A stretch of 64,000 nt of DNA from Dicyema japonicum (GCA_011109175.1 RDEW01000050.1:212694-276693); one strand, 5' to 3'; shown: positions 18,266 to 42,482, counted from the stretch's first letter. Program-made: numbers and translations. Notes: generated from the letters alone by a model not told the origin.

Positions 18266-18395
18266 TTACTAATAACTTTAGACTAATATAAGCATAAATT
18301 TTAGTTACTAATTAACTTTAGTCTATGATTTGTGTAAGTTACTGATATCTAAAAAAGTGAACTACCGATGTCTGATTATTACTTTTTATTATTAT

Positions 18396-19891: not shown

Positions 19892-19999
19892 GTGAAAGCA
19901 CACAATTTGTGTCTCTACCAAGTCTCTCATCGTGAATCACTATAATAACTCCCCTTAATAGTTCTTTAAATCCAATTTTGCATCGCCGATTCTTTACAG

Positions 20000-20700
20000 T
20001 CGATATCCAAGGCAAAGAGCAGGGGACCAAGGGGGTCACCTTGTTGAACTTCAGTCTTGGATTTGATGATGTGTTGCCTGAACATCATCGTACATGGGGA
20101 ACCATTTGCAAGTTTTACCATTCTGCTGATTTTGGAGATCCTGGAGATGCTAGTTTCTATTATTCTATTTCTGCGAATACTATTGAAAGCATGCGGTCTG
20201 TAAGGGTCTTTATTGAATTAATGAGTTCCCCATATTGGCGGTTGTGGAAGAAATAAGGTTTTTCATATGACTCGGACGTACAGGTCGTCCAAGCCAGCAC
20301 TGCTATTTCATGGGAAAGATGAAATAGCAGACCGCATATTACCTGTGGTTGTGCCAAATGTGGAATGTCCTTCCCAATTTTTGTTTTGCTTAGATCCGAC
20401 GGGATGAGTGGATGTTTTTGGATGATGAGCTCGAGGGTTTCTTTAGTTGGTGAAAGAACTTTGTCAATGTTGGAGAGCGTACGCAGAGCATCCCGAATGT
20501 CCAGACCATGATCCTGGGATCGATAATAACTTCGGTAGTTCGTGGGCATAGTTGGAAATTTATGCAGGAAAATGCGGTCAGAGACAACCTTCATAGAGTT
20601 AATTAGGAAATTCTCTGCATTGGCAGCGATAAAAGAGTCCTTTATTTGGTTTAGCGGTAGGCCAGCCACCACTCATACTCCATAAGAAGGATTAAGTAAC
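20000..20700 (-). mobile_element. CRE-like RT fragment
   Basis: LIIQKHP, AFNSIRR and EVQQGDPLGPLLFAL across two frames. Confidence 0.8.
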
Positions 20701-20744
20701 CGATCGCGGTAGGGGACAAGTGTGAATTGGTGGCTTTTTTTACC

Positions 20745-21200
20745 CCGAGATCACCGGATTAGAAAAAGTTAAAAGTTAACTACTAACTAAGTGATCTCGG
20801 TTTTCCGGGTTCTAGCTCTCGTTCGGGGTGCTCGAAGATCCAACAGAATTGGTAGAAACGGGGACGGTCTCATTCTCCATAGATTCCCCGCATTTTCTAG
20901 ATAGTCAGATATAGAGAGTGAAAACGGACAACCGGTTTTCATTGCCCACTGTAGAAATGACTTCCTCTCCACCTTAGATGTTCTTTAACATTCAATACGT
21001 TATTCAGTTTTCTTATTAATTATTTTCAAGGCAGCAAGTTGTGCGGCTTCTAATTTTTGAGACGACGATTCAGAAATCATCGAGCTCCAGGAAGGACATG
21101 CGTATTCGATTACTGGCAAATTTTCTGTAGTAAGAAGGTGTTGCGCCTGATTGGTGATCGGGACAAATTTTTCAATTAAAGTAATAAATTTCTCGACCTT
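20745..21200 (-). mobile_element. Ingi/Vingi-like LINE 3' fragment
   Basis: PVIEYACPSW motif, ORF ends EIT-TAG, family tail; nearly identical to 30271-30720. Confidence 0.8.
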
Positions 21201-21369
21201 AAAAGACATTCGGCTAAAGACAGTAGGGATAGTATATTTCTTATTAACACTGCCTTCAGTTACCGTAATGGTCGTTTGCTTCCAGAATTGTGCAAAGGGA
21301 CTAAAATCCCATCTCCAAGCTTCAAAGAGAATGTGCTACAAATACAGAGTTGAATATTTTTGATATAAG

Positions 21370-21960
21370 AGCAATCACATGAGCATATTTAATAATTTGT
21401 ATATTATCCAGCAGCCCTGTTATTATTCAGTTTATTGATGGTCAGTCTCATCAGTAGTGATTAGTAGATTTGATTTCCTCAGTCTCAAACAAATCAAGCT
21501 TACATTTTTGACAGTTGTTTACAGAAATGGTCTGCAATAATCTCAGTTTTTTCTTTATTGTCGATTACAGTACTTGAATTTCATGAGCACAAATCTTTGT
21601 AATACCCATTTGTAATAAGCGGACAGAACGTCTGTATCCAGTCCCGTATCCCAATTTTTCAATTTCTTTGAAATGTTTGTCATTTTTACTGACATAAATT
21701 CCTATTTTCTTTATCACACAATTTCTCCTTTTCTTAAGTTGATATAAGTATTATTATAACTGCATGAGTTCAGTTCCAACCGAAATTTTTCCGCTCCTTT
21801 GTTAATGGGTAAATTTTGGGATCAAAGACACCTTTTCTCCTTAATCTCAAACGATAGTTCTCACGAGTAATACAAGCATAGTTCTCCACTGCAAAACGAT
21901 CCGCAATTGATTTATTCCTTCTAATCTATTCAAAAAAACCTTTTCATCCTAAATCATGAA
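21370..21960 (-). mobile_element. RTEX-like LINE fragment (EN-RT linker)
   Basis: KLNNNRAAG motif in degenerate sequence. Confidence 0.55.
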
Positions 21961-22799
21961 ACCAAGAGCTTATAAAGTGGAGATGCCTCCATAACTTCGA
22001 TAATCGGTTAACAGTGCTTTCAAGGATCTTATGCAAAATGCTGGAGATTGTGAATATATAATTTGTGGAAAAGGTAATAATTTATATTACAAAAAACTGG
22101 CCGCGTAAATTCTAGACCTTCGGAAGAGATTCCTAGAGATTGTATTAAGCATCTTTTCATTTTATGATGCAGACGGTGTACTCACATGTATTGGGACATC
22201 GCCTATTTGACTAGGCGGCCATCAAATTTTTATTATTTTTTATGCATAACTTTACACTTAATAATTTCAATAGATCTCGCTTTTATCAAAATGATAAAAT
22301 TTCATTGTTTCCATTACATTATTATTTTATACCATTGACCTCTATATAAGGAGCTCTTCTCCAGTTATCATTTCTCCCTTTGCAAAACTTTTATAGTGTA
22401 TGAATGTAATTTCATATTGAATCTTTGAGTTCTTTCGAAATCCTAAATCCCCTCTTCTATAAAGGCTACAAGGAGGTTCTTCAGCACATTGAGTAGTGTC
22501 AGACTGTGTAAATACGTAATTCATAGAGTTAGCGTACTAGTCTCTTCTAGAGAGAAATTATTTTCTTCCTTTTATTATGTTACTCTGTCTTCTTCAAGAG
22601 AGGATTTACCAAAACACCATCTATAAGTGAAGAATTACTCCATGAAAACCAAAATAGTATTTCTTTAAGTGCACTCATTGAAAACGAATGAAGGCTTAAA
22701 ATCTTTTCCCTGGACTTAATATCTTCCATGAAGCTCCCTTTTATACAAATTAAAATTCCTGTAACAGAAAACGCGGACAAATTCTAAAATAAGTTATTC

Positions 22800-23986
22800 T
22801 GTCACGAGCCTAGGTGGTTACACTTATGGACTTAGAATAACCCATAAACTAAAAAATTATGGCGACCAATTTAATAGGACCCAAGAACAACAAACAAGAC
22901 AACAACAACGATTTATTGACAAAAGAGTTAAGGAGATTTCTGGAGGGTATTACATCTGACTCCTACCATTTAATTATTATTTTCTTAATAAATTAAATAA
23001 TTATATTTTCTACTAATAGAAGTTACAAAATAACTTAAATAGAGAAATAATAAGTATATCACGAGAAATAACTAATGTTCTAAACATAGAACATTATTAT
23101 AAATCTCGCATGAAACTACATTTTTTGGTTGAGCTGGTGACGTGGCTCTAATAAAGTATTAACATGTCTGAAAAGTACGAACCTTATCTTTTGGAGAAAT
23201 TCTCGCTGCTCTCATTCAACGTCCGAGGCCTAACCTCTTCTTGGAAAAGGACCTCCCTCTGTCAAGACCTACATAATTATGATGTCGCAATCGGTTGCCT
23301 ACAGGAAACCAAAATCCAAGATAACCACGAAGAAACATGTGGTAAATTCAAATTGATCTTTCTCCCGACTGTCAACAGGCACTATGGACTGGGTTTTGCC
23401 ATCAAAATGGAATTTCTCCCCCATATCTACAGAGTATGGGCAGTTAATGACCGCATCGGAGTTCTACAAATGAAGTTTATGAATGCCAAAGCAAGCACTG
23501 ACATTGTCTCCATTATCAATGTATACGCACCTCACAGTGGTTGGATTAACAAAGATCCGGCTCTATTTGATGACTTCTACCCAGATTTATCAGATTTATA
23601 TTTAGAATTGGCCGACTCCGCACTCTTATTTATAGCTGGTGATATGGATTACTTGAGAAATTTGGCTCAGGATCGTGGAAAGTGGAGAAAATTAACTAAA
23701 AGATTAATGTTTGGTACTGCACTGGTTTTGTCATTTCCAATGGCAAGACGTTGTGCTTTATAATAATAAATAATAATAATGAAACTACATCCCTGATAGA
23801 CACTAATTCCCTATGCGGCCTTCGGCCACTTTTCTTCAAATAGACACTAATTCCCTATGCTGTTTTTATTTAATAAAAAATTTAATTTCCTTTATTTATC
23901 TCAAACGATAAATTAATTTTCAATCTTTATCTAAAAATAAGCGAAGTGTAACCACCTAGGCTCGGTAACACCCTAGGCTCGTGACA
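22800..23986. mobile_element. TG...CA element with 15-bp terminal inverted repeats and a 5-bp TSD (non-autonomous Ginger-like, or a solo LTR)
   Basis: TGTCACGAGCCTAGG (22800-22814) / CCTAGGCTCGTGACA (23972-23986); TSD TATTC at 22795-22799 and 23987-23991; second partial IR copy at 23944-23964. Confidence 0.8.
23122..23778 (+). mobile_element. Internally deleted RTEX-like LINE with an in-frame 199-aa ORF (23164-23763)
   Basis: 12-bp TSD ATGAAACTACAT (23110-23121, 23779-23790), (TAA)n tail; APE N-half (SFNVRGL, CLQETK, NVYAPHS, IAGD) fused to C-terminal LRNLAQDRGKW. Confidence 0.9.
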
Positions 23987-24039
23987 TATTCTGTTATAAT
24001 TTTAAACATTAAAACGATCAAACACAAAATAAATCGACT

Positions 24040-24340
24040 CCTGCAGGGATTCACATCTACAAGTGAAAACGGTTATTTGTCAAGGCTCATTCCTATTGAA
24101 CTCTTGGATAACACCAATAGGAGTATGCCTCAGTTTGGACAAAATGTTTTCCACCAGTGCAAATGCGGAAAAACTGTTGTTGTTAAAGGACTTCACATCC
24201 TCTCCTAAGACTAATCGTAGGAGGGCTTTAAGCCGTTAGATATCCAGTACCACTGGAGCCGTCAGGACAACATAAACAAAAGACCTGACGCAACGACTCC
24301 TTTCCCAAATACCCATGATCGACTACAACTAGAGCCGAAA
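24040..24340 (+). mobile_element. CRE-like fragment
   Basis: CKCGKTVVVKGLHILS and NKRPDATTPFP. Confidence 0.55.
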
Positions 24341-24699
24341 CACATAGGAAAGCATTTCGTCTCCAAATCCGTCACAAATGATACCCTGGGGATTCTATGA
24401 TCTAAGTCTCTATCCTTTCAATCAGATCACGATAGCAAAAAGGAAAAGGAATAGGCGACAATAGGGATGGCTGAATGAACGTACTTTGTTCCAAATCGTA
24501 AAGGGAATGCTCTCAATCAAGAACATTAATTACTACTTGATAACAATAATAATGGCCTTTTCACGAGAGTCATAATATTTATAGCTCCGCATAGGAAGGA
24601 CACACACTTTATTTAAGTAAAGAACAGTTAATTTTAACTAATCGTAGAACCAAGGAATGATCTTCACTTCTTTTTTTCTTTTTCTTGTGTGAGTGTCCT

Positions 24700-25133
24700 T
24701 TCTAGACAATCCAGTTCCGCAGTGAGTATCTACTGATGACGGCGTCACTCGTCAAACCCTTTCTGCATCGTAGATGCGTGGAACCTTCCACCAGGTAAAC
24801 AGCAGCGAGATTCAAACCCGTAACCTAAGTCATTTTAGCCCGACACCTAACCACTTATTTATTTATTAACTCCGAATACACCGAGAAAGAAGTTAAAGTA
24901 AACAACTAATTAAGTGTATCCAGTTTCCACTTCTACAGAAACAGAGTCCATCCGGAATCAGCATAAAAGGTAAAACGTCCATTACATACAGTTGTGAAAA
25001 CCTCTCCAGTGGAGTGGGGGAGAGCAAATGATCCTTTTTTGTGCCGGCCTGGCACTGGGCGTCACCTAGACAGGTGGATCACATGACGCCACTCTAATAG
25101 GAAGAGAAAGGACACCTAACCACTATGCCACTT
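24700..25133 (-). mobile_element. tRNA-derived SINE-like element, interrupted in its A-box region
   Basis: Rejoined head GTGGCATAGTGGTTAGGTGTCGGGC...GGTTACGGGTTTGAATCTCGC has A- and B-box-like motifs; the 3' extent is uncertain. Confidence 0.55.
24856..25110 (-). mobile_element. Short non-autonomous element with the Vingi-like 3' tail
   Basis: 14-bp TSD GACACCTAACCACT (24842-24855, 25111-25124); tail ACTTAATTAGTT...AATAAATAAATAA; homolog at 36492-36822. Confidence 0.85.
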
Positions 25134-25377
25134 GATAAAAATGTGAAAGTTTAATAAATCATTTATTTAATATGGATAAATATCGGATCAAATTTAATTA
25201 TTTTATTACATATAATTATGCAATAGAGCTTTAAAATATAGTTTCATTAATTTCCTTTATTATGCTTATATAAAGTTTTTATTTTCGAAAAAATGTAAAC
25301 TTAAATTAAAATAAATACTAAAATTAAATTAATAAACAAACAATAAAATATTTAAATTAAATCATAGCACATCGTTT

Positions 25378-26089
25378 ATGGTTTCTGTTTGTTGTTTATT
25401 TTCTAGTCGGAAGATTACGCTTTACACAGTCTCAACTCAGAATGGAGTTTTTGGTTGATCGATGAGGACCGCCGCCTAACCTACAAAGACAGAATGAATC
25501 ATTTGTGTGACTTCAAGTCTGTAGAGGAATACTGGGAGTTAAGTCCATTATAACTCATCTAGTGCCTTCTCCAGCATGAAATCGGTCTCAGATATGAATG
25601 TAGGAAGTGATATTTGCATGTTCAAGGTTATATTAAGTTGTTTACTCTCAGAAGGGAATTCCTCCTATGTGGGAGCACCCAGCCAATTCCCAGGGAGGAT
25701 TTTGGAGCATAATAATAAGCAAGGAACTGGATAACGGGAAGAGTCACCGGCTATGGGAATTATTGGTAGTCCAAGAGGTTATTTGAAGACGATTGAGCTG
25801 GTCAGGGATGCTTTCGAGGAAATGACTGAATACATCAACGGAATCACCATGAATGTGCGGCGACATGCTAACAAGATGACTTTGTGGACGAACTCTCACA
25901 AATCAGTAGAGATTGTTCGTGCTATTGGGTGGAATTGGTTTTTATTTTGCAGAATCGCTATCAAAGAGGCATTGGGGATCCCTGAAGACATTAAGATTTC
26001 CTTTGAAGTATAGTTTTGATTGATTTTAGCCAAATGAGGACGCTCTGAAGAGGACGACGTCTGCTCGACTTTGCAAAATTGTTGTTTAG
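25378..26089 (+). CDS. eIF4E: Eukaryotic translation initiation factor 4E family protein, 7 exons
   Basis: HSLNSEWSFW, SVEEYW, MFKKGIPPMWEHPANSQGGFW, KMTLWT. Six introns of 26, 25, 25, 23, 24 and 22 nt; first exon is ATG only; stop TAG. Confidence 0.95.
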
Positions 26090-26711
26090 TTTTAGGATTA
26101 ACTTATTTTGATTACTTAATTTGTTTATTGTTGGCTTTGGGGATTTAATAATTTCTTTTGAGACTTAATCAGGACTATGGAATATTGAAAAGACTAGATT
26201 TTGTTAAAAGAAGGGAGACTTGATGGATTTAGATCGAGAATCTATTTGAATATTCGTGTATTGATTATTCCTTATTTTGAATCACGAGTTTTTGACAAGT
26301 TCGTTTCCTATTCTCTCATTTTCTAACATTATTTTTGTTAATAAAGAATTTATTTAAGAAAGAAAATAGAGTAACGGTTATATAGAAGCTGACTGCGTGG
26401 GCTATTCCCTCAATGTAATAAATATGCTACAATTATTCTGTGAAGGTATTTATGTTAGTTATTTGACTGTAGGTTATTATAGATGAAGATAATGTGGTGA
26501 GTAGTCTCTGTCATGAGTTTATTAATTGATTATTACAAATATTGTACTTTAAGTGTCATTAATTAGTGTAATTTTATAATTTTGTTTAATAGTGCATGGC
26601 TTAATTTGAAAATGAACGACAAACAAATTACTAAAGGATATAAATTCGTTTCAATACAAATAATCTTATCCAAGTTCTACTTACTTCCGGTTTTAAATGC
26701 TTGTAAACCTT

Positions 26712-27175
26712 ATTATTATTTATTTAATAACCCCGAAAAGGGAACACCAAGAAAGAAGGAGTAATCCAACTAATTAAGTCGTCGTGTTCAATCAACTCCT
26801 AAAGCCGACGATTGAGTACGCTTGTGCCTCATGGGCCTATGGAGTTTCGATATCAAATTCACTCAAGATCAATTCCCTATTTGGCAAACTAGCACGTCTA
26901 ACGAATCTACCCCCGATCTTTCCCCCTAATGGTTGACCACGCCGCAATCAAAAATAATGGCTCCGGCTTCATCTGTCTGTGTGGCCAAGAAACAAGCCGT
27001 TTCTTCCATTCAAGGCTGAAGGCTTCAAATACACGAAATTTGAGGAAAAAACCCACCCCTCTTCAAACCCTAATGAAAGATGATCGTCGTTTATTCAGGA
27101 AAGCCGTGGGTACTCTGGAGGAACACAGGAAAAACCTCTCGATTTTGTTGAGGCGTACCGGGATCACTTAATTAG
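26712..27175 (-). mobile_element. Vingi-like LINE derivative with an inverted ORF segment, copy 1
   Basis: Reverse-oriented 3' tail (26712-26779) abuts a forward ORF end (LLKPTIEYACASW...RTGIT*); 11-bp TSD TTGTAAACCTT (26701-26711, 27176-27186). Confidence 0.9.
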
Positions 27176-27479
27176 TTGTAAACCTTGGTGGACCTCAAAC
27201 ACTTTGTGTTTACATCTTTCTTTAGTAAACACTTTATCTTAGATTTATAATTATTTTTAATAAATCAATAATTTTAAATATTAACTTAAGTGTATCATTT
27301 TATTATAGATTTTCATATAAATTTTACTGAATTGACTCGTATTAAAATTTATGTGACGTAATTTTTAATTAAATTAAAAATAAGCACTTTTTCTAGTAAT
27401 TAATTAAACTATTAATTTAACCCACAAATAACACCAAAAATTTAATTATAAGAATTATTTAGTGTGACGTTCTGTGGTT

Positions 27480-28750
27480 CACCAACTCTGTAAGTTCCTC
27501 TATTCGGATTAGAATAACTTATTCCCGGTCTATCTGCTCTGTTATTTTGGACAAGCTTTTCATCTGTGGGGACATTAATGCGAAACACCCACTCTTTGAC
27601 TATCAACCCTTCGACAAAAGAGGGAGACTAGTATTTCACAGACGGACTCATTGAAGACCATGAATGACCATCAAAGACACAAGAACATTCTCCATGGTTA
27701 CCGGCTCCTGAGTGCACTAAGTCTTGGTCGGTCATTTATGATTCAAGAAGCAACCAAATTTTGCTAAAGTTCAAAGAGACCTTCATTCGAGGATCTCCTT
27801 GTCACAACTATAAACATCCCAACAGGAGACTCTATTAATTACTGACGACATCTATCTAGGTTGCTTCTCCCTCGACAAAGTGGTTGTCTATATCAACTGG
27901 ACTATCTTGGGGGTAAGAGCAATTGCAGTACAGAAACATTAACTAACCTCGTCAGTGGGCACGGAAAGATTCTTTGTTTAAACTAAGAAATCGTCTTAAA
28001 AGGATATCGACCCACGAAACAAATAAAATTCAGGATTCGAAACTCTGAACCAAGAAATAAAAGACAAACAACTAAAACACAGAGGGCTAAATGGACCCTA
28101 ATTTTTTCAGTTTTGGAGCTACTGCGAAAATTTTTGTAGGTCATTAGACACGTTTAAGTCCTCAGAACAGACGCATGACGAAGATTACAACTTAGATAAT
28201 TTAAACAAGTTGGTAGAATTCTGTGATAAAATCGCCCCACAAAGACCATAAAGGGCATTCTTCCCCTCATTTTGTCTGAAGAAAACCGAATACGAGACCA
28301 GAATCAAAATATTTTACCGAAAATGAGGTAGTAGTACTATACAGGTTATAACAACTTTCTCACTCGGCCTGATAGGATTCCTATTATTTTACTGAAAATC
28401 TGAGATAAACTGGTTTTTTCATTGGATAAACTAGTTTTTTTTCAAATTAAGAACATTTCAGCACGTAATTAGAGCAGAACGCCCAACCCATTTAACCACA
28501 ATGACAGATTTTACCCTCATTGGATGTCAAACAAACTCAGATACCAGAAGACATCTTTCAACTAATGAATGATGACATTGTCCTGGCTAAAGTGATCAAG
28601 ATATTCAGGTTGCAGCAACACCTGGACTATCTTAGCTGTTGATTAGAAAACTAACCGCCTATCAATTAGCCATGAGAAATCAGTAACTAAGTTATTCACT
28701 TCTGAAACTAATTAGAGGGACAGTAAAGCTAAAGGGGGATAATACCAAAT
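27480..28750 (+). mobile_element. Highly degenerate Vingi/Jockey-like LINE
   Basis: FICGDINAKHP (APE) plus scattered RT-like remnants with many stops. Confidence 0.5.
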
Positions 28751-29229
28751 TCCATTTTATCACCTTCGGCATGCATATTTTTTAATTTTAATTTTTCGAG
28801 TTTTTGAATAAAATACTAACGTGTCATTCCAAGTTTAATCTGGAAGGTCAATTAAATAGTTACGACATCATTTTTATTACTATTTCACAGGTGCTCTGTA
28901 AAAATATCTGATTTTCTCATTCCATCTACAGACTCTATTTTTTATTTATTAACCCAAGAACACCAATAGTTAATATAATTACTAAATTATTAAGTGATCT
29001 CGACAGCCTCAATCAGATTTCTCATTCTCTCTAATTGGCCGACCCTTAAATTGGCCAATTTATGGCTAAAAGTTAACGTCAGGGGTTCAAAAAAGCAAAT
29101 TTTCCTAAGAAATTGTCCACACATTATAAAAAACATAAAATTTACTTTTACTAATCCTTTTCAATTATTTTATTTAAAAATCAAATTTTCAAACTAAAAA
29201 TTTTACCATGTGTTCGAAAGCTTCTAGTT

Positions 29230-29550
29230 GAGTAGTTAATTACTGATCGAGTGGCTGTTACCTCTGACTACTGCCAGGGATATCCTTTGGAAAAGCCACT
29301 CGGTTTCCCGACGCTCCCTCGAGGCTTTGGTCAATAGACACCCAAGTGCTCTAAGGAAAGAGACCGTCTTGGGGCCAAAGACTCCGCTCGTCTTGACGAC
29401 CACTGGCTGTACATGGAAACGGTTTAGGAGGCTGCTGTATTTCTTTATTTTTGAGTTTTCATATAAACGGGCGGCCTCTCCCGCTTTCATTGCCGACCTC
29501 AAAAGTTTCGACTGGGAAAAGCTGTCAGTACAGGCTTAATTGTTTCTAAA
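29230..29550 (-). mobile_element. CRE-like 3' fragment
   Basis: PVVVKTSGVFGP..FLRALG..WLFQRISLAVVRGN. Confidence 0.8.
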
Positions 29551-30004
29551 AACTCGAAATTTTGAGATATAAAGACGAGAATGTTCATTTAATAATATTC
29601 TTTCATTTCCTAGAGTCCATATTAAAAACATCTAGAAATTATATTCTTTCAACAAAGACATACAAATCGTTAAAATTTCCTGAACATGATGTTGATGTAT
29701 TTATGAGGAATAGACAAAGCTTATAGATTAAAATTTGTATTTTAATAACGATTTTATGCGGAACAAAAAAGTATCTGACATTAAAAAATATGGGAAATTA
29801 ATTTAAATATTATTTATCGTATGAAATGTAGGTTAAATATGACACCTGTCAGATTACAATGACAGGTGGTGGCAACCAGTCCAGCATGTCACATATTTTT
29901 CTATCCATGTACCTATTTAAAATAAATCTCCTTCCTTGATGTCTATTCCTATTTTCTGTTTAAAGTTGTTTCTGTAGAGATTTTTATTATTGATAAAATT
30001 ATTT

Positions 30005-30260
30005 ATTTTATTAACCCCGAAATCACGAGAAAGAGGATAAAAGTTATCGTCTAATTAAGTGATCCCGGTGTTCATAACAGTCCTTTTCCTGCGGTTAGTT
30101 TTGGAGTCCTGGATTAATCTCTACAGCAGGGAAGGAATCTTCTCATATATCGAGCAGGCGTCCATGTATAGTTTGATGTGCGGCCCGAAGTGATGGTCAG
30201 GGGACTTCATCTTGAGGAAGTCCGGTGACGTTCCGTATGGTACTCCATGATTGAGAGGAC
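30005..30260 (-). mobile_element. Vingi-like LINE 3' fragment
   Basis: Family tail and GGGATCACTTAATTAG stop motif; related to 56313-56560. Confidence 0.7.
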
Positions 30261-30270
30261 GTTTAGTGGG

Positions 30271-33200
30271 TTTTTAACCCCAAGATCACCAGATTAGAAA
30301 AAGTTAACTATTAACTATATGATCCCGGTTTTCCGGGTTCTGGCTTTCGTTCGGGGTGCTCGAAGATCCAACAGAATTTGGTAGAAACGGGGACGGTCTC
30401 ATTCTCCATAGATTCCCCGCATTTTCTAGATAGTCAGATATAGAGAGTGAAAGCGGACAGCCGGTTTTCATTGCCCACTGTAGAAATGACTTCCTCTCCA
30501 CCTTAGATGTTCTTTAACATTCAATACGTTATTCAGTTCTTATTAATTATTTTCAAGGCAGCAAGTTGTGCGGCTTCTAATTTTTGAGACGACGATTCAG
30601 AATTCATCGAGCTCCAGGAATAACATGCGTATTCGATTACTGGCAGTATGTTTTGTCTGTAAATTTTCTGTAGTAAGAAGGTGTTGCGTCTATTATCGGG
30701 ACAAAATTTTCAATATGTTGGTCCTCCTCCTGACCTTGATAATTACGTCATTGACGTGTTGGCCAAATGTCAGGAGAGTATCCAACTTTAATCCTAGTAT
30801 TGTTGGAGACTTATTCATAGGAATTTCATATCCAAATAATTTGATTTTGGGAGAGTATATAATGATCTTCTATATGTAGAGAAAATTGTTATAAATGACT
30901 TTCCTGTAGAAATTTCCAGTCGATTTGATGTAAGCCGATCTTCCAACATACCAATATAACTTTGAAGTTTCATCCCTGTCTTCTCATAGTTAGAGCCTCT
31001 CGTCGCAAGAACAATGTCATCTGCGTATGAGAGTATCAATGTATCAGGATCATCATTAGTGGGAAGGTCATTGTGTACAAGTTGAAGAGCAGGGGAGAGA
31101 GAAGTGAACCTTCGGCAATAAACGGGATTTAGATTTTTTTGTCCGACATCACTTGTCCTCTTCTTCCATTTAGAAAATTCGATAGCCATCTTTTAATGTC
31201 TGGATTTATAAGAGTGTCAGAAATTTTCTCTATAAGTAGCGTCCGGGACACGGAGTCGAATGCTTTCTTCAAGTCTATTGAAGCCATTGTGGTCCTTTTA
31301 TGTGGTTTTGGATAGGAGAATCCATCAGATGTATATTGAGTTAATTTTGTTAAGTGAGTCGTAGTAGAATGATTTTCACGAATCCATGCTGGAATACTCG
31401 ATTTGGTACAATATTTTGATTAGTGTTAAAATAATTTTTCCATAATTCGGGACAACGCACATAATATTGCAATTGGAGATAAGAAGAGGGATCGTTTAGT
31501 GTTCTCCGTAGTAACAAAGTGGACGTTTTTTTCGACAATCTCAATAGTATTCTGAGACATCGGTTTTGTACAACTTCCAACTTGCTCTGTGCCGATATTG
31601 ATAAGGGGGCAATCCATGCAGCACAGGCGTACTCGATATTTGGTAGAGCAAATTGTTTGTATAGAAGCTCTAACGATGGGCGAGAAGATATTGGAGAGTG
31701 AGTGAATGCCTTGAAAATTCCAATTTTCTTTTGGATCTTCGCGGTTACTAGGTCCACTTGATGGGTAAATGTGAGTAGGGGATCAGGATGACTCCAAGGA
31801 TTGAAAGGGTCTTCTTAATAGGAAGCGGGAGTCATGTAATTTATTCGTGTTGTTGCCCGTATTTCTTTTCGTGCTGAGGTAAACGTCATTACATGTGACT
31901 TTCCTGATGATATATTCAGACGGTTCTTCAGGAAGACCCATCAGGTTTATTAATCTTGACGACCTTGCGCCTCCACGATTCTTTGATGATCATCCGCATG
32001 CGATAAAAGAATTGTGTTTTGGTGGTTGGGGATGGGAGGTCACAAAGGAACATGTTGAAGAACTTTGGTGATAACAGTGATCCTTGTGGAACTTCATTTG
32101 GAAGGTATCGCGGTTTTGATTTTTGGTTGTTTGTCACAATTTCCCCATTCGACCGGTTGATATAGTTTGCCAACCATGACTTGAATTTAAGGTAGATCGA
32201 CGTCGTAAAACTTTTCGCTGTAAGGATCTTCCGGGATAAAAGTCTTCTCTACATCCACTGAGACCAGCACAGTTCTCTTGTGTGGATTTGGGGTATTCAG
32301 GCCGTCCGAAATGAATTGAACCAGTTTTGTAGATGAGTTGTTGTTCAGTGTCCTTCGCGTAATCCGTGTAGAAAGATGGTAGAGTGATGAAAGGACAGAT
32401 CTTGAGAAGGATCAGTTTTTCTAACATTTGTGATAAGGCGCAGATGATGGATTCCGAGCGGTAGGAGGACGGGAAGTTTGGTGGTTTGTTTTTCTTCAGG
32501 ATAGGGTTTATCAGGGATTTCTTCCATATTGACGGAATCTTGTTCTCGTTTATTGAGAGGTTGAAAATTTGTGTTATTGGGGCCGTCGCGGAATGACCCA
32601 GGCGTTTCAGTTCGAGAATGGAGATGTCATCTGAACCGCGGCACTACGAGTTATTCATTTTCCTGATTACTGATTGCACCATTGAAGGGTCGAAGAAAGT
32701 CATGTTGGGAGATTTATTCCTTCGACCATTGCCAGAACGAACATCCAGGTCTTTTGAATACGGTTTATGATAATATATAGGACGACCCATCGGAATGTAT
32801 CTTTTGCGAGCTCAGAGTATAATCTTGTTGAGGTATTTGACAGCAGCGTCGATAGATCCGAAGATCTCTATCCGGAAGGCCTAAAGGTGTAGTTCGATAA
32901 AATGTGTGAAGGCGAGCCATATTGCCTTTGAAAAATTCACATTGGTTCTCGGAGTGTTCATTAACTTATGTTTTTGTGGGATCCTCATAAAGATCGGGTT
33001 ATGGTCGGTAAGTATATAACATCCCATTAAATGACAGCCGCAAGAGAAGGAGCGGCAAAAGAAATATCGGGGTCCTTGTGTGTTTGCTTGGATTATTGAG
33101 AATGATAAAGTCGTCCAAACTGTGAGATATAAGGGCTCCCCGTTGATCCAGTTGTTGGTCAGCATGCCATTGAGAACTCTTCGAATTTAGTCACCGACAA

Positions 33201-33600
33201 TTAGCGTGTTTTCCAACCTGGTGAATCGATGAGTTCGGGGCTGTAGGCCGCTGGGGCATGACGGTGGAGGGGGTATTTACATATTGACAACTGTCAATCG
33301 GAGAGAAGGTAGGCATATTCTCAGCGTTAGATGTTCCAATGTGTTATCTTGGCGGGAGGGGTCCGAGATACTTCTAGCCATTATGTGCTTTCTGATTAGA
33401 GTAATAAGCCTCCTCCCTTTCTATTACCTCTGTCTCGTCTGAAAACGGAGTATCCAGGAAAGTTGGGGGTTGGTCGCTGTGGGTTAAGTTTCGTCTATTG
33501 GAAAAGAGCTATATCCATTGAGTGTTTTATGAGAAATCGTTGTACTTGGGCAATTTTTGTTATACATAGCTTCCTTATATTCAAAAGTTGCCAATCCGAT
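30271..33600 (-). mobile_element. Cluster of degenerate Ingi/Vingi-like LINE segments
   Basis: LSYADD (twice), VPQGSLLSPK, YKQFALPNIEYACAAW, SIDLKKAFDSV, SGSDDIS, TDHNPI and APE remnants to ~33600. Confidence 0.8.
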
Positions 33601-33963
33601 ATATCTTTAGAGAATAAAAAAGGGGAACAGACCTAAATCTATTTTAATAAGATGAAGACATTAAGTGAACTATGGTACACCAGAACTAGGACACCTAATA
33701 GCCTTTATACCAATTGAGTTTATTCGTAGAAATAAAAAAACATAGGTTACCTGAAAAAAGGTGGGCGGTTATAGTAACAATGGATCACCACATAGTTAGT
33801 TACTCTTGTCTTCAGTCATGATGTTCGCAAGAAAAATTAATTTTTCACTAAATATACAACTAAACGTGGCAATGCCAAAAAATTTAGAAAAAGCAAAGCA
33901 ATAAAATTTATTTAAAAAATAAAATATTTATTTGAAAGAATAAAATACTTAATTTAATAATTA

Positions 33964-34960
33964 ATGTTTTATCCTGATGGTGATGATTTTTGGGACTCAA
34001 CAATTACATTCAACGACGTAGTCACTAAACAGAAAAGCAAGGAGGACGACATCTCCCTGACAAACAACTTCGACCAGATCTCCACAGGCAAGACAAATAA
34101 CTGGGATATGGTCTACCAAAATGTTGATATTCTAAAATCCGAGGAAAGGGTAGTCACATTTTACAGGGATTTCAAGTAAACTGAAAGTTGTCATTTTAAG
34201 GAAGTTCTCAACCTGCATAGGAACTCTGGATTCTCTGATTGGGAGGTACTTTGGGGACGAGATTATCTCCCTTTTGGCTTATCTGCACAAAAACTTTGAT
34301 TCCAAGATTTTGAATGACAAGATTTTTCATCGTCCACCCGCCGTCTCCCATTTTATTCGCTATCTGAAGAAGTGCTGTCCTTCAGCGTCCGTCCATGAGC
34401 AGGTCAACGACCTTGTCCCCTTGAGTGATCTACATGTAAGCACTTTCTTGAAATGACAGAGTTTTAGGATCTCCCACATTTTCAGCATTTCTGACCTCTC
34501 GAAGAGGTCACAGGCTCTTAGAGACTTCATCGACGACTCACAAGTTGATGGATACAAGAGGAATCTACTCACAGTTGGCAATAATATTAATCAAGGAGGC
34601 CTACAATCTCTTTACATTGGAAAACAATTCAAAACAGAGTCAGCAGGAGACAGTGGGGGAAAAGTACCGGAGGATAATGAAAGTTGGTCTCGTTTCTAAG
34701 GAGACGGAGAACATTTCGTTGGAAGAGCTCCATAAGGTTGGGGCTGTTGGTTATTATAGATGTTCAACATGAGCCCGAAGGAAATATTGTGGAATGAATT
34801 GAGAGTGTATTGTGAAAGTGAAAAGTGGAGTAAGATAGTGCCGGTGTTGTATGACCACAGAGGGAGACGAAAACATAATGATGAGTTCCATAGAAGGGTT
34901 TGTGGATTTGTTATGAGGTTCAATCCTCCTGAATTATTTATTGAGAGAAATTTATTATGA
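33964..34960 (+). CDS. VIPAS39: VIPAS39/SPE-39 (VPS16B)-like protein, compact, multi-exon
   Basis: N-terminal DDFWDSTITFND; spliced GDEIISLLAYLHKNFDSKILNDKIFHRPPAVSHFIRYLK resembles the SPE-39/Vps16-C helical region; 24-25 nt introns traced. The 3' exon structure is only partly resolved. Confidence 0.6.
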
Positions 34961-35257
34961 CTTTATAATAAATCGGTTTTAATAGGAAACAGGGGATCCT
35001 TATTTCTGTAATTAATATTTTTGCGCGTGTCCTCCCCCAATGTTTCCCTCTACCATAAAAGTCACTGGATAGTTGTTGGCAGGTTGGTCTGTGTTTAAAG
35101 ATGTTGGAGATATCTTGAATTTACTTATAAAATGATTCCACCAATATACAACATTCGAAACTTATTTCCCAACTTTCAATCAATTTACGACTGAATTGAG
35201 CCGCGACTTTCTCAATTCCCTGTTGTATCAGTTAGGTACGTTCCCAACGTGGCTCTA

Positions 35258-36020
35258 ATAATAATAACTATTTATTAACAAAAGAGTTAGGGAGTTTTCT
35301 GGAGGGTATTACATCTGAGTCCTGCCATAAGGCTTGGACTCCACACCTGGACCCTTCCTCCCTTTTAAAATTTTTCAGGATGTTTCTCTAAGCTTTATAT
35401 ACGTGTCCTGGGTCTTTGATCTCCTCCTGAAACCACTGATCCGATTCTCTACAATCCCGCTAATCGATTCTAACAGCTTGTTTTCGTCTTCGCTTAGACA
35501 GTCTTTCAGTTTCTTGTTTAAGGAGAGCTTAATTGCAGCTCTTCTAGTTTTCTCTAGAAAGGATAATATCTTCTCCCTCTTCGGAGAGAAAAACCACACA
35601 TAAAGTAGACTAGGGAGAATAACTCTCTTGAAGATGAACAGGTAGGTTCACAGCTAACGTGTAACTTCCGTGAACATAAGAAAGACTGAAAAGCTCTCTT
35701 TCTCCTCTCCTTTATGTCGTCCATGTAATCTCCTGCGTGTCCATAGTCGACTCCCAGGTAGCGCAGGCTGTGTGGACTGTTTACTCCAGTGTGTATTCTT
35801 GATTCAGGTGCTTTTTCACACTGCTTATTCGGAGTGCGGATGATTTTTTCAGTAGAATTAACCCTCTCATGTTGCACCATTGCTCAATCTGGTCCACATA
35901 CTCCCGGATTCTTTCTTCATTTAGAAATGTGCCCATCACAATTACGTCATCCGCATAAATAAAAAGACAATTATTAATATTCCTCGGACGTGGAAAACTC
36001 GCAATGAATATAGTAAACAA
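35258..36020 (-). mobile_element. 5'-truncated LINE (separate family)
   Basis: 12-bp TSD AACGTGGCTCTA (35246-35257, 36021-36032), LFIYADDVIV, LRYLGV, (TAT)n tail. Same C-terminus type as the LINE piece in 18396-18830; same tail at ~22915-22975. Confidence 0.85.
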
Positions 36021-36491
36021 AACGTGGCTCTAGTATGACATTTCCCTTTTTTGGAAGAAGTGTGGATTCTATTGATATATCTTTCGTATTTGCGTCACTC
36101 AAGTCAAACGGCTACTTTGGTTAAATTAATATTTGATGTAGCTTTGTGTACTATGACACCGCTCTAGTAAAATTAATATCTCACCAATATCGTCACCATT
36201 CTGCGACTGAGTAGACAAGGACACAATAAACATCGGATGCATCTTGGTTAGATTCTCGCAAATTGGACTCAAGGGGATGTGTCTGTCCGGAGGAGGAACA
36301 AGGGGATTATTAGCTATTCCCGAATATTTCTTAACAATTTAAGATGACGGATAATTACAACCAGTAATTAAATGTATTTGGCAAGAACTACGACATTCAG
36401 TAAACATTGCGTGTAAACCAACAACAATGTCTCTGCCAAAAGCTAACTGTTAAACTAACAGTCAATTAAGACGGAAATGGTACCACAAAAA

Positions 36492-36822
36492 TTTATGTAT
36501 TATTTTTTTATTTATTAACCTCGGATACACCAAGAAAGAAGTTAAAGTAAACAACTAATTAAGTGTATCCAGTTTCCACTTCCACAAAACAGAGTCCATC
36601 CGGAATCAACATAAAGAGTAAAAGACGTCCATACTTGCAGTTGTGGAAACCCCTCCAGTAGAGTGGGGGAGAGCAAATGATCTTTTTCATGCACTGGGCG
36701 CCACCTAGACAGGTGGATCACATGACTCCACTCTAATAGGAAGAGAGAGGAGGAACAGACGAACAAACAGAAACTTCAACCAATTAACCACGAAGCACAC
36801 ATGGCACCACGCGGCTAGCAAC
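36492..36822 (-). mobile_element. Short non-autonomous element with the Vingi-like 3' tail, longer copy
   Basis: Homolog of 24856-25110; probable 10-bp TSD ACCACAAAAA (36482-36491, 36823-36832). Confidence 0.75.
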
Positions 36823-36849
36823 ACCACAAAAACATAAACATGACTAATT

Positions 36850-39377
36850 TAAATAATTGTTATGTTATGTTGTCCAATTAAGTCGTGTCCGACCCTTGGA
36901 GATCTCATGAACGAGTTTCCTCCACTCTCCCGGATCCGTTGCAATTTGGAGTAGCCTTGATATAGGTATTTCCGTGACGTCTTCCACCGTGGATAGCCAC
37001 TGAGTCCTCGGTCGGCCAGGTCTTCTCTTCCAGTAATATTGCTCAGCATAATGGTTCTATCCAGTGAATCAGAGCGGACAACATGCCCAAAGAACGTCAA
37101 TCTGTGTTTTACGATTCTTCCTTCTAGCGAAATGTCCGTTTCCACCCGTTTGAACTACATCTATGTTATTATTTGAAAGTCCAAGGGATTCTTAGTAACC
37201 TCCTCAGCACCACAGTTCAAAAGCATCAATTTTTCGTCTATCCGCCTTTTTCAATATCCATGATTCTGCGCCGTATAGAAAAACCGGGAACACGATTGCA
37301 TTAACTAATCTGCATTTGGTCCTTATGGAAATATCTTTGTTTTTCCAAATTCTATTCATTCTCTGGAAGGTGTCTCGTCCCAAGGAAATTCGCCTCTTGA
37401 TTTCTAGCCTCCGTCATCATTCCGATTAATTATACATCCCAGAAAGACAACATTATCGCAACTCTATTTTTTTCCCAATTTTTAGTTCCATTATTCCATT
37501 ATTAGCAGTCGTCATAATTTTGGTCTTCTTGATATTTAGCAATAAACCAAAGACGGCGCTCTCTTCTCTGAATCTTAGAATCAACTCCCTTAGGCCATCC
37601 TCTGTTTCAGCCAGTAAGGTTGTATCGTCAGCATAGTGCAAATTATTGATGTTCCTGCCTCCAATTCTAATCCCCTTATTTGATATATCCAATTTAGTCA
37701 TGATCATTTCGGCATAAATATTGAATAGGAGATAATAAGCATCCTTGTCTTACTCCTTTACCAATTTTGAACCAATCGATATCTTCATACACTGTTCTAA
37801 CAGTAGCTTCTTGATCCTTATAAAGAGATTTGATAAGCAATATCAGATGGGCATCGAACCCAAATTCTTTTAAAGCGGACCACAGCTTGTCATGTATAAC
37901 GAATCAAAAGCTTTCCGATAGTCAATGAAGCACATGTATAACTTTTTGGGATTCATGGGCTTTCTCCATAATCCACCGGACATTTGCTACATGGTCACGT
38001 GTGCCTCGTCCCTTCCTGAATCCTGCTTGGACATCTGGTAGAATCATTTCGGCATTTGGTATTAGAAGATGTTATATTATCTTTAGAAGTATTTTGCTGA
38101 TGTGGGGAATTGAGGCTATTGTACGATAGTTTGAACAGTCCTTGCTATCCCCTTTTTTCGGTATTGGAATAAATATAGATCTTTTCCACTTGCGTGGCCA
38201 AATACTAGTTTCCCAAATTTTTTGATATAGACTGGTGATAGCTGTCACCGGTATAGCCTTCAACAATTCGCTTGAGATGTTGTCAATCCCTGGTGCCTTG
38301 TTCCCCGTTAATTTCCGTGTAGCCCACACGAATTCCTCCTCAAGGATTTTATGCCCCTCACCCAACGTTGCTTCATCAACATGTATGAGTGGGCACACAG
38401 TTTCTAAATATAATCGTTCCGTATATTTTCTCCAACGATTTAGATGTTCTGTTGGCTTAGCAATTCTACACCATCCTTGTCCTTGATTTTGTCCATCAAT
38501 TTCGTAAAGGGGGTTCGTAATCATTTTAGTTGTGAATACGCATTCCTCTTATAGTCATCCACCTCCAGTAGTCTTCTTTATCCTTCCTGGCTGCCTTTTT
38601 GAATTCAGAGTTAAGTTTTCTTGTCTCGTTATATTCCCAGAGACTTTAGCAACTTTACGAGCCTCAGCAATGTTTAGGGTGTTGACAGAGAGTCACTCAG
38701 AGCACTTGGCCGGCGTTTTTATTTGACATGGTTTATTGCAGCGTTCCTGATGACTAACTGCATATCATTCCATAATTCATCAGGAATCCTTCCGTTCAAA
38801 TCCAGTAATCCAATATTGTGCTTAACTTCCATTGCGTATTCTGGTGGTATGTTTGAGACATCGAATTTCTTTACTCGGGGGGTATTCCAAGTGTTACTGA
38901 ATTTCGTCCTAATTTTTGCAACAAGTAGCTGATGGTCTTTTCCACAGTCTAGCCCTGGATATGTTTTGACGGCTGTTATATAGCTTTTCCAGCGTTTGGC
39001 GCATAAAATATAATCAATCTGGTTCCTAGACATTCCATTTGGCGACGTCCAAGTGTAATCGTCGTTTGTGCTGTTTGAACCATGTGTTAGTTATCTGAAA
39101 TCCATTTTCCTGACAGAATTGGACCAGTCGATACACAGCATCATTTCTTTTCTCAAACCAAAACTTCCCACAATATCCGTATGTGGCATACACCCAACTT
39201 TTGAATTGAAATCCCCCATTATGTAGATTATGTCCTTTTTGGGTATTAGTTTTAGTGCCTCTTGAAATTCATAATAAAATTGGTCAATTTCGTCATCCTT
39301 GATAATAGATGTTGGGGCATACACTTGCATGACCGTAATATTCAATGGTCGTCCACGGACGTGGATTAATATTATCC
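36850..39377 (-). mobile_element. RTE (BovB-like) LINE, frameshifted, 5'-truncated
   Basis: QVYAPTS, MGDFNSK, NQIDYI, KAPGID, IPIPKKGD..CSNYRTI, FIDYRKAFD, INNLHYADD, LTFFGHV. Confidence 0.95.
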
Positions 39378-40957
39378 GGCCAGGATATTGTTGACAGATA
39401 AATAAATCCATAGTTTGAAGGTCTTAGTTCGAGAATAGTTAAATACGCACACATTCATGATAGTTATTTTTTTCACGTACGATCATTCCATCACTCCTTT
39501 GTGGACTGGAAGGATGGTATTACACTGCATACAAAGAACGTTTTATCTTGCTTTTTGAAAAATCGAGGAGAGCAGGGTTCAAGATTGCCCTACACAAAAG
39601 GCTCGACAAAAAGCTAGATAAAGATGAAAAATTGCTAGTAATGTCGATAAAAGATGCAGCAGGAAAAAGGATCGAAAACTTCCTAAAAAGAGATGTCATA
39701 ATTAACTCGTATGTTGCAGCATATAATAAACGATAAGAGGGGTCTCTGAGCGCAGAGAAGAGTCCAAGCGTTTTCAGGACTTGCGGCATGAGGCAAATAA
39801 CTCCCTTTTTAATTTTTCCTTGCAAATAAAGTTGTTAAAGTTAAAAGACAGTTATTTAGGTCATAAACAGTAAAAATGTATGACTAAATTAACTGACCTA
39901 CATAATATAAATTAGTCTAAAAATGGCTCTTACATAACTTTTTTGATACCATGGGGGTAACTCCTTACTTGTTCAATGCCTTTATCTTAGACTAAAAATA
40001 AGTTTTTATTAATAACGAATTAATGAAGTCAATTGAAACTCAAAGAACATAATTATGGTCTACAGGCATTGAGCACTAAGGCATTGATCATAATATTAAA
40101 AATAATTTGGAGATGTCGGGAATCGAACCCGAGACCTTCAGCATGCAAAGCAGACGTCATACCACTAGACCACATTCCCGCAGTTCTTGTTAGTTAAAGG
40201 CTATCTCGATCTCGCTAATTCTTTTCTATCCTTCTTATAAAGATTTCATCTTTATTCTCACTTTCTCTTAGATCATCGAGGTTGTCGTCTGTTCTAAATT
40301 TTTAATCGACATCATTTAGATTACTATTAATTATGAGAGGCAGTGCTAACCTCAGAATTCCCAGTATGATCTTCCCATTACGTAAAGTAACTTTATTTTC
40401 TGAAGTGGCCTAACCTTTACATAAGCTGTGATCAATCAACTTCCACTTTGATCTCCGTTTGCTCAGTATTACATAATTTGTAGATGTCAGGTTCTTTATT
40501 TTGTCTCATATATTGAGGATAGAGCATCAGAGTGCAATAAAAACTAAGGTTTTCAAAATATCATGTTTTGGTAAAAAATGTCAATGGACTGCGAATCCAA
40601 GTCCATAATCGCTTGAAGACAGCAAACACTGATCGCTTAACATATAAAATCATTTTCTAGAGTTTTTTGAATTGAATTTGAGATCACTGGTGTTGAGGGT
40701 TTCAATGGAGAGCTGAAAACTAGTAAGCAATTGGAAGGAAGCCATTTGTATATTATTATAGGCAATTACGCTATGTAATAGAATGTGACAAAGCATGTGG
40801 AAGACGGATAATCAAACTACTAGGTAACTTATTATAATGCATAATTAGGAGTAATGGTGAGGGATTAACGTATATTTCTCTCCTTTTTCCTCAAGTAAAG
40901 CTTTTCTATATTCATCAAATTCATAATCGAGTCCGACAATATTCTGATTCTCAATTA
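39378..40957. repeat. Dispersed ~1.5-kb repeat, copy 2
   Basis: Colinear with 18396-19891, with several small indels. Confidence 0.95.
40108..40179 (-). tRNA. tRNA-Ala(UGC)
   Basis: GGGAATGTGGTCTAGTGGTATGACGTCTGCTTTGCATGCTGAAGGTCTCGGGTTCGATTCCCGACATCTCCA: canonical T-loop, G3:U70, A4:C69 mismatch, T5 terminator downstream. Confidence 0.85.
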
Positions 40958-41204
40958 CAGTGCGAGGGGTACAGTTCTCCCCACTGCAAGGAATGGACGT
41001 TATGCTAGTTTTTGCTGAACTTGTGTGACATTAGAAGGATTTTGTTTCTGTGATAGTGGAATCTGGGGCGTGCCGAGGGGCCCATATAGGCAGCCGTCCA
41101 GCTTTCGCACGCCTTTGAGTGTAATATACTTAATTAGTTATCCTTGAAATATTTGAATGCATAAAAATGATATTGTAACGATCGTGGATTATTAGACTGC
41201 ATAT

Positions 41205-41666
41205 TTATTTATTTAATAACCCCGAAAAGGGAACACCAAGAAAGAAGGAGTAAACCAACTAATTAAGTGGTCGTGTTCAATCAACTCCTAAAGCCGACGA
41301 TTGAGTACGCTTGTGCCTCATGGGCCTATGGAGTTTCGATATCAAATTCACTCAAGATCAATTCTCTATTTGGCAAACTAGCACGTCTAAAGAATCTACC
41401 CCCGATCTTTCCCCCCAATGGTTGACCACGCCGCAATCAAAAATAATGGCTCCGGCTTCATCTGTCTGTGTGGCCAAGAAACAAGTCGTTTCTTCCATTC
41501 AAGGCTAGAGGCCTCAAATACACGAAATTTGGGGAAAAAACCCACCCCTCTTCAAACTCTAATGAAAGATGATCGTCGTCTATTCAGGAAAGCCGTGGGT
41601 ACTCTGGAGGAACACAGGAAGAACCTCTCGATCCTGTTGAGGCGTACCGGGATCACTTAATTAGTT
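41205..41666 (-). mobile_element. Vingi-like LINE derivative with an inverted ORF segment, copy 2
   Basis: Same architecture and breakpoints as 26712-27175; imperfect TSD GACTGCATAT / GACTTCATAT (41195-41204, 41668-41677). Confidence 0.9.
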
Positions 41667-42119
41667 TGACTTCATATATGATATTGTAGGATCTTTGACC
41701 CTAGTTTTTAAAAAAATAATAATGAACAAGTCCAAAATAAATATAAAATCAGCAAATGATACAAACCAAATTGTATTTAATAGTCAAATGAAATAACTCA
41801 ATTTTCCTTTCTATACCCTTCATGTATTTTATATGTGTGGCACAAACGGGACCTTAGTTACTATATCGTTCTTTGGTTCTGTTAAGGTGCTTTTAATTCT
41901 TGTGTTTCATAGGTTATATATACCGACCAGTTATGCGTTTTGCTGAGGGCTCTCATGAATATCAAAAAAACCGTGTACGACCGCATGAAGAACAAAACAC
42001 ACTTAAATAATCAAGACTTCCTGTCCCCAGTAATTAAAACTTTCAATAAGTTTCCGTTTTCCATAATATATTCTACCCCTTTCAAGATCTTTTTCGATCT
42101 GGAAGATCAAAAAGCATTC

Positions 42120-42482
42120 TGTTTTGAGCACTGTATATAAACAATTCATTGAACCATGCATCTCTTATGCATGTAGTATATGGGGCCCACTCATCTCCTG
42201 GACGAATGTCTTGAAGATCGAGGCTAGCCGGAAAAAAGTCTCCAAAATCACGGAACGCTGGATTTCTGAAGAGTTCCAGTCATCAATGCCTCTTGAAGCC
42301 TTGATACGAATGAACCAAGGAACGCGCCGTCATGACTGCGAAGGTCCAGTCACTCGACCGATACATGCTTGTGTGGGGTCGAGGGAGGAGCATCGAGCCA
42401 AGATGAGGTCCCTGCTAGAGTGTGCTGGGATCACGTGATTAGTTAGTTTGTGTAACCGTGGTCTCTGGTGTTATTATTAAAA
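42120..42482 (+). mobile_element. Vingi-like LINE 3' fragment
   Basis: YKQFIEPCISYACSIW, ORF ends AGIT-TGA, family tail. Confidence 0.8.

Follow-up and report, generated by a model that had tools for sequence, protein, structure and literature searches.

The 64,000-nucleotide (nt) stretch of the Dicyema japonicum genome analyzed here (GCA_011109175.1 RDEW01000050.1:212694-276693, hereafter the window) carries two copies of a short, internally inverted unit, at 26712-27177 (copy 1) and 41205-41666 (copy 2), both built from the 3' end of a long interspersed nuclear element (LINE). The units are 462-466 bases long, lie 14.5 kb apart in the same orientation, and showed 96.8% identity across a 462-bp alignment in a pairwise comparison within the window. 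Each consists of a reverse-complemented LINE 3' untranslated region (3'UTR) with its A/T-rich tail (64-68 bp), followed by the forward end of the LINE open reading frame (ORF, ~394 bp), and each is bounded by its own target site duplication (TSD). The components, together with a further repeat that surrounds copy 2, are as follows.

26701-26711, no strand: left TSD of copy 1, TTGTAAACCTT, a perfect 11-bp repeat of 27176-27186
26712-26779, minus strand: tail arm of copy 1 (LINE 3'UTR and A/T-rich tail), beginning on the minus strand with the stop motif at 26768-26779
26780-27177, plus strand: ORF arm of copy 1 (final ~394 bp of the LINE's ORF, in forward orientation), closing with the stop motif (27166-27177) and followed by no tail
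27176-27186, no strand: right TSD of copy 1, overlapping the final TT of the motif (2-nt microhomology)
41167-41177 and 41678-41688, no strand: outer 11-bp direct repeat ATGATATTGTA, perfect, bracketing copy 2 outside the 10-bp TSD
41195-41204, no strand: left TSD of copy 2, GACTGCATAT (chance ~0.002)
41205-41268, minus strand: tail arm of copy 2, with an A/T-rich tail 4-5 nt shorter than that of copy 1
41269-41666, plus strand: ORF arm of copy 2, first base G41269 versus C26780 in copy 1, inverted repeat of 13 bp
41668-41677, no strand: right TSD of copy 2, GACTTCATAT, with one mismatch and one extra T before it

Anatomy and insertion scars of the two units

Alignment and translation confirmed the arrangement proposed by an earlier sequence-only reading of this locus, namely a reversed 3' tail joined to a forward ORF end without a tail of its own, with a 12-13 bp inverted duplication of the stop motif. 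The motif, ACTTAATTAGTT, occupies 26768-26779 (minus strand) and 27166-27177 (plus strand) in copy 1, and 41257-41268 (minus strand) and 41655-41666 (plus strand) in copy 2; with at most one mismatch it occurred 10 times in the window (0.87 matches expected). The inverted junction reads tail arm, AACTAATTAAGT, C or G, and then GTCGTGTTC; with C26780 as its junction base the inverted duplication of copy 1 is 12 bp long, and with G41269 that of copy 2 reaches 13 bp. Microhomology amounted to 1-2 nt (T or GT) at the inversion junction and to 2 nt (TT) at the 5' junction of copy 1. The plus-strand translation of 26780-27168 corresponded to a frameshifted LINE ORF end running from '..VVVFNQLLKPTIEYA..' through '..LLRRTGIT*'; it opens with the motif '..VVVFNQLLKPTIEYACASW..', which we take to be of the type found after the reverse transcriptase (RT) domain in elements without long terminal repeats (non-LTR elements), and its frame is broken near 26909-26918. 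The tail arms (26712-26779 and 41205-41268, minus strand) aligned with the normally oriented tails of LINEs and of short interspersed nuclear element (SINE)-like repeats elsewhere in the window.

When each unit was aligned together with 60 bp of flank on either side, similarity ended exactly at the unit ends and the flanks were unalignable, in agreement with the earlier description of a near-identical pair with the same breakpoints in different surroundings. The separate TSDs claimed for the two copies were also recovered, matching at 11/11 bp around copy 1 (26701-26711 and 27176-27186) and at 9/10 bp around copy 2 (41195-41204 versus 41668-41677; joint form GACTKCATAT). A 464-bp interval was placed at random in the window 20,000 times and flush repeats were scored; a perfect flush repeat of at least 11 bp, the class of copy 1, arose by chance with P ~1e-4, and a flush repeat of at least 10 bp with at most one mismatch, the class of copy 2, with P ~0.002. 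The outer repeat ATGATATTGTA, likewise reported as bracketing copy 2, was found at the positions listed above, and the next ~10 nt are also similar. Since the order of this repeat and the inner TSD is swapped between the two sides, it is probably a short local duplication (~38 bp) that was already in the target before copy 2.

Other classes of repeat were considered for the pair and set aside. Segmental or tandem duplication was excluded, because blastn (word size 9) and tblastx comparisons of 17-29 kb with 29-44 kb returned only discrete interspersed repeats at irregular spacing, with no similarity extending into the flanks of the units. A miniature inverted-repeat transposable element, or another DNA transposon with terminal inverted repeats, was rejected on the grounds that the inverted repeat is not terminal (its left arm lies 52-56 bp inside the unit) and that the TSDs enclose the tail too. 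The two units were also rejected as an LTR-like pair bounding a 15-kb element, given that copy 1 has its own perfect TSD and the outer flanks of the pair differ. An exact 12-nt stop motif with no LINE tail behind it was additionally observed at 41128-41139 (+), 65 bp from copy 2; the segment 40950-41204, with this tail-less motif at its end, was considered as a SINE fragment and dropped, as no other copy of it was present in the window.

Parent LINE and sister relationship of the copies

Normal LINE copies in the window consist of an ORF end, ACTTAATTAGTT or a near variant of it, a ~55-nt 3'UTR and a TAAA-rich tail. Three repeats were used as comparators for the units.

61082-61446, plus strand: normally arranged 3' end of a related LINE, in which ORF end, stop motif, 3'UTR and tail follow one another, with an RT domain just upstream at 60584-60907
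42133-42470, plus strand: 3' end of a related, 5'-truncated LINE, with an intact 104-amino-acid ORF end ('..LLECAGIT*')
24855-25112, minus strand: short SINE-like repeat with the stop motif and the 3' module as its tail; second copy at 36504-36751, minus strand

In tblastx comparisons, the ORF arm matched LINE ORF ends at 42133-42444, 61082-61210, 55451-55567 and 31548-31667, as well as others in the window, and Pfam placed an RVT_1 domain directly upstream of one related LINE end. The SINE label of the 24855-25112 repeat is provisional, resting on our reading of a stretch that resembles transfer RNA (tRNA), on which tRNA scans made no call. Evidence on the parent element came from Logan contigs of four runs placed on 26400-27500, among which run X1 represents the same organism as the window according to its coded label and run X6 carries a different organism code. 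In X1, the ORF end followed 26779 as its reverse complement in 41 contigs, the parent 3'UTR followed 27178 in 26, and additional upstream ORF preceded 26778/26779 in 16, where it stayed open in the VVFNQ frame as read from a 30-nt consensus. A joint from 26779 to 27165 on opposite strands, with 13 shared letters, was present in both X1 and X6 (opposite-strand parent joins in these runs were also placed at 27165/27178 to 26779/26766), and the X6 contig bearing the parent joint was 213 nt long and 95-99% alike. It follows that, in the parent LINE, the arms are collinear neighbors that share the stop motif as their overlap. In X5, a small run that assembles high-copy repeats only, 26779 has the parent arrangement to its left and right, and the X5 pieces listed include none that crosses the inverted junction.

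Word depth in X1 was ~472-478 in both flanks, compared to 230,000-1,300,000 summed over the unit, with the parent 3' end at ~500-2,700 flank depths. Because summing word depth over contigs does not yield a copy number, and contigs drop rare variants, the size of the family to which the unit sequences belong, hundreds to thousands of copies, is to be read as an order of magnitude. The parent thus appears to be an abundant LINE family with an RT domain and a short C-terminus ending in '..GIT*', followed by the stop motif, a ~56-nt 3'UTR and an A/T-rich tail. As to its clade, the Atlas gave only a weak lead to 'transposon BS' of the Jockey group (score 0.90, 142 shared features), below the guide value. 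Protein searches returned no candidates for the 80-amino-acid ORF of the unit and no match for the RT fragment of the related LINE. An 89-amino-acid piece compared with 1.84 billion representatives yielded a single match, a bacterial repeat protein of 3,119 amino acids, which was discarded as spurious because it matched via a 35-amino-acid repeat. A search for a conserved 3'UTR hairpin across six tails gave 5 weak pairs and zero compensatory changes.

The two copies differ by 15 substitutions, comprising 12 transitions and 3 transversions. With the family majority letters from X1 contig depths as the outgroup, most of these differences were private to one copy (the copy-1 letter C26997, for example, at ~1.8 flank equivalents of depth), and three rare letters were common to both copies: T26845 (3.4% of family depth, ~50 flank equivalents), T26880 (1% of family depth, ~4.7 flank equivalents) and G26932 (0.4% of family depth, ~2.5 flank equivalents). 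The frame break near 26909-26918 was also common to both. An extra base was present in X5 behind 26909 in 70.6 of 87.7 depth (80%) and behind 26918 in 87.7 of 87.7 depth (100%), and the two together would restore the frame; in X1, the corresponding extra bases made up only ~0.3% and 1.5% of the placed depth, respectively, and a sharp X1 depth dip at 26918-26919 may reflect short contigs clipped there. The shared rare letters and the shared frame break therefore identify the two units as each other's closest relatives within a very large family. As the breakpoints are the same, the flanks, TSDs and tail lengths are different and the rare derived letters are shared, the pair points to one inverted ancestor and at least one secondary copy. 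A scan of metagenome contigs for the 22-nt junction gave no match, as expected for an animal repeat.

Origin of the two copies

We consider it somewhat probable that a single inversion was followed by at least one remobilization in trans through the retained 3' tail. An abundant LINE family would once have made a 5'-inverted insertion of the twin-priming type, in which a first complementary DNA (cDNA), primed at the tail, copied only the 3'UTR and the 12-13-nt stop motif, a second cDNA, primed at the same stop motif, copied ~394 nt of the ORF directly upstream, and the two cDNAs were joined with 1-2 nt of microhomology. The inverted product retains the 3' module that the SINE-like repeats of the window also use as a tail, and for this reason its transcript, in the sense strand of the tail, would have served the LINE machinery in trans, on at least one occasion, as a template for reverse transcription and insertion. 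Such recopying would have left two sisters with their own TSDs and different tail lengths, the latter being expected for separate target-primed events. The source may have been either sister or a third copy. If it lay immediately downstream of a host transcription start, the 5' end common to both copies would be accounted for, and so would the very low copy number, the progeny being dead on arrival. The twin-priming geometry itself, which the sequence-only reading had recognized, was borne out by the TSDs, the sense 3' segment and the inverted upstream neighbor with its overlap, and by the collinear parent in the X1 and X6 contigs; every structural feature of a twin-priming 5' inversion is present except uniqueness of the breakpoints.

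Several observations weigh against this history. No transcript, promoter or defined start accounts for both copies beginning at the same nucleotide, and the unit lacks ~10 conserved nt that are found upstream of the motif in normal LINE and SINE tails. The 14.5-kb spacing of the sisters is very unlikely under random genome-wide integration (we estimate ~1e-5 for each pair, assuming a genome of a few Gb); that pairs are only noticeable inside one window softens this improbability but does not remove it, and either a local process or a family larger than the depths suggest would offer an alternative explanation for the spacing. The only C/G transversion among the 15 differences falls exactly on the inversion junction, which is expected about once in 100-500 cases (0.2-1%) under plain descent with mutation. 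The C/G difference could have arisen by chance, by templated 'quasi-palindrome' correction between the arms, or as the trace of independent junction formation, the last of which we rate lower because independent end-joining is not expected to keep the total length to the base. A last reservation concerns the size of the lineage, which the depths put at a very low ~2-5 copies (a few tens at the most, should T26845 be a marker of it): the figure is only an order of magnitude, since summed depth is not copy number and rare variants are dropped by contigs. Private variants of single copies were retained in the contigs, and a variant common to many copies should therefore have been retained too.

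The alternative we take most seriously, while still considering it unlikely, is recurrent formation: a LINE 3' fragment, already frameshifted and transcribed, would have been the one short RNA behind two independent inversions, the stop motif would have served as a preferred internal site of priming or stalling, and the inverted product would never have been retrotransposed. The junction base alone shifts the breakpoint by one nt, with G in copy 2 being the next tail-arm base of the parent and C in copy 1 its next ORF-arm base, and the shared rare letters, at 2.5-4.7 equivalents, are deep enough for a third copy in normal orientation to have been the source. One X1 contig (~0.7 flank depth) could supply a further instance: it links the same tail-arm end (tail arm, motif and CG, up to 26781) through 'AT' to 27124 on that strand, which makes the forward ORF arm much shorter. 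It may come from a third locus with an inverted junction, whose ORF arm would measure 54 nt, but with 29 letters on its shorter side it could equally well derive from a unit with an internal deletion. Recurrent formation would moreover need three coincidences, namely identical internal priming nucleotides, identical ends of the ORF arm and an overall length equal to the base, and independent end-joining should not keep length. Two sisters of so small a lineage lying near each other and in one orientation would fit a copy made at the DNA level, through a template switch during repair or replication that placed a templated insertion 14.5 kb away without an RNA intermediate. We give this only a small chance, because the copied stretch is exactly the retroposon from end to end with no flanking base shared, and the 10-bp flanking duplication and the different tail length are marks of target-primed insertion. 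That one real copy was placed twice by the assembly is very improbable: short-read contigs did cross each unit/flank boundary by only 28 nt, below the 31 needed to count as bridging, but the copies differ by 15 substitutions, in tail length and in their unique flanks, both flank contigs are at single-copy depth and run into the unit, and letters private to copy 1, such as C26997, are represented at the depth given above.

The sequence-only reading had gone further and regarded the unit as a mobile element in its own right. The recopied inverted product is retained in our preferred history, whereas amplification, a promoter-like head and a B box found no support. tRNA and Rfam scans gave no match in either unit, with no tRNA, 5S or 7SL-like head, and no B box was found in the units within 1 mismatch, A-box-like matches being non-specific. 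An amplifying SINE-like family, with many full-length copies, an internal promoter and RNA antisense to the parent ORF that perhaps feeds silencing, is accordingly doubtful, and slightly less credible to us than recurrent formation. Numerous copies would make the presence of two in one 64-kb window far easier to explain, and T26845 at ~50 flank equivalents could mark such a family; G26932 and T26880, however, reach only 2.5 and 4.7 equivalents, the letters as a whole span 2.5-50 equivalents versus 500-2,700 for the parent, and X5 shows the parent arrangement with the inverted junction absent from its listed pieces. The depth evidence thus appears to argue against amplification, of which we see no sign. 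The panhandle claimed for the unit RNA fared similarly, in that both copies formed the stem in their minimum-free-energy fold, copy 1 also in its centroid, a point that could be counted for an amplifying family, but the fold energy of the whole unit was no better than that of shuffled sequence (z 0.22 and -0.46). The stem is a trivial consequence of the 12-bp inverted repeat and not evidence of function, and antisense silencing of the parent LINE is purely conjectural. We therefore attach very little probability to the most far-reaching version, in which the flipped product would be a working non-autonomous retroposon whose transcription begins at a fixed point, its first base, and which the parent LINE copies anew, possibly near the source. 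Its RNA would be antisense to the final ~130 codons of the parent's ORF, could fold into a 12-13-bp panhandle and would feed small-RNA silencing of that LINE.

Known retroposons and other features of the window

Inverted LINE insertions are regarded as dead ends, and twin-priming 5' inversions of mammalian L1 were reportedly described by Ostertag and Kazazian in 2001. Variants of the L1 twin-priming inversion have been discussed (PMC2837659). Like L1 twin-priming products, the units described here are bounded by TSDs, contain a sense 3' segment ending in a tail with the adjoining upstream segment inverted, and carry a 12-13 nt duplication and 1-2 nt of microhomology at the inversion, with 2 nt at the 5' junction of copy 1. 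Unlike them, they derive from a non-L1 LINE with an A/T-rich (TAAA-like) tail, their 3' segment is very short (64-68 nt), and one and the same product is found at two loci, each with its own TSD, in contrast to L1 inversions, which arise once and lead no further.

Stringent LINE/SINE partnerships, in which SINEs and other non-autonomous retroposons are moved via a LINE-derived 3' tail (PMC3747384), and LINE-derived SINE bodies (PMC5786205) offer a second comparison. Like tail-sharing SINEs, the unit is short and non-coding, and its 3' end is the 3'UTR and tail of the partner LINE, the same module that ends the repeats at 24855 and 36504. Unlike SINEs, it lacks a small-RNA-derived head and RNA polymerase III boxes, its body is the antisense of a LINE ORF end, and its copy number is very low. 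It also resembles processed pseudogenes, or 'dead-on-arrival' retrocopies of one master, in having few copies, probably made in trans from a transcript with a context-set start, but differs in that the template would be a rearranged LINE insertion with the LINE's own 3' recognition module rather than an mRNA poly(A) tail. In PMC5786205, neither 'twin priming' nor 'inverted' nor 'antisense' occurs as a term. A full-text literature search, which cannot prove absence, found no report of a remobilized twin-primed product, and among the papers listed none connected twin priming with CR1, RTE, Jockey or molluscs. Twin-priming structure and tail-based mobilization are each already known, and what is new is their combination, an inverted LINE product that has been copied again. 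This suggests that, for LINEs recognizing their own 3'UTR, a product with a flipped body stays mobilizable if its last ~65 nt survive, and a remobilized inversion would be one more possible route to non-autonomous retroposons with odd bodies. The practical weight is small, the lineage seemingly amounting to a handful of copies.

Further features were observed in the window. At 25407-26010 (+), three contiguous frame-shifted open segments matched Pfam IF4E (profile positions 2-39, 59-96 and 97-145, E 1e-6 to 1e-8), and this region, ~700 bp from copy 1, appears to be an intronless, broken eIF4E-like copy and is probably a processed pseudogene. tRNA-Ala(TGC) was predicted at 19106-19177 (-) and 40108-40179 (-), the second scoring 59 bits in Rfam, and both predictions fall within a repeat of 1.6 kb whose two copies (18386-19891 and 39366-40957) share 89% identity. 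When 18386-27177 was compared with 30271-41666, all five repeat pairs were direct and 4/5 were collinear, with nothing similar between the pairs, a pattern that may reflect strand bias of retroelement insertion or chance. Tandem arrays occupy 8041-8894 (period 63 bp, 8 copies) and 17935-18066 (period 33 bp, 3 copies), and an inverted repeat pair of ~340 bp, 91-93% complementary, lies at 6232-6568 and 61911-62246, 55 kb apart.

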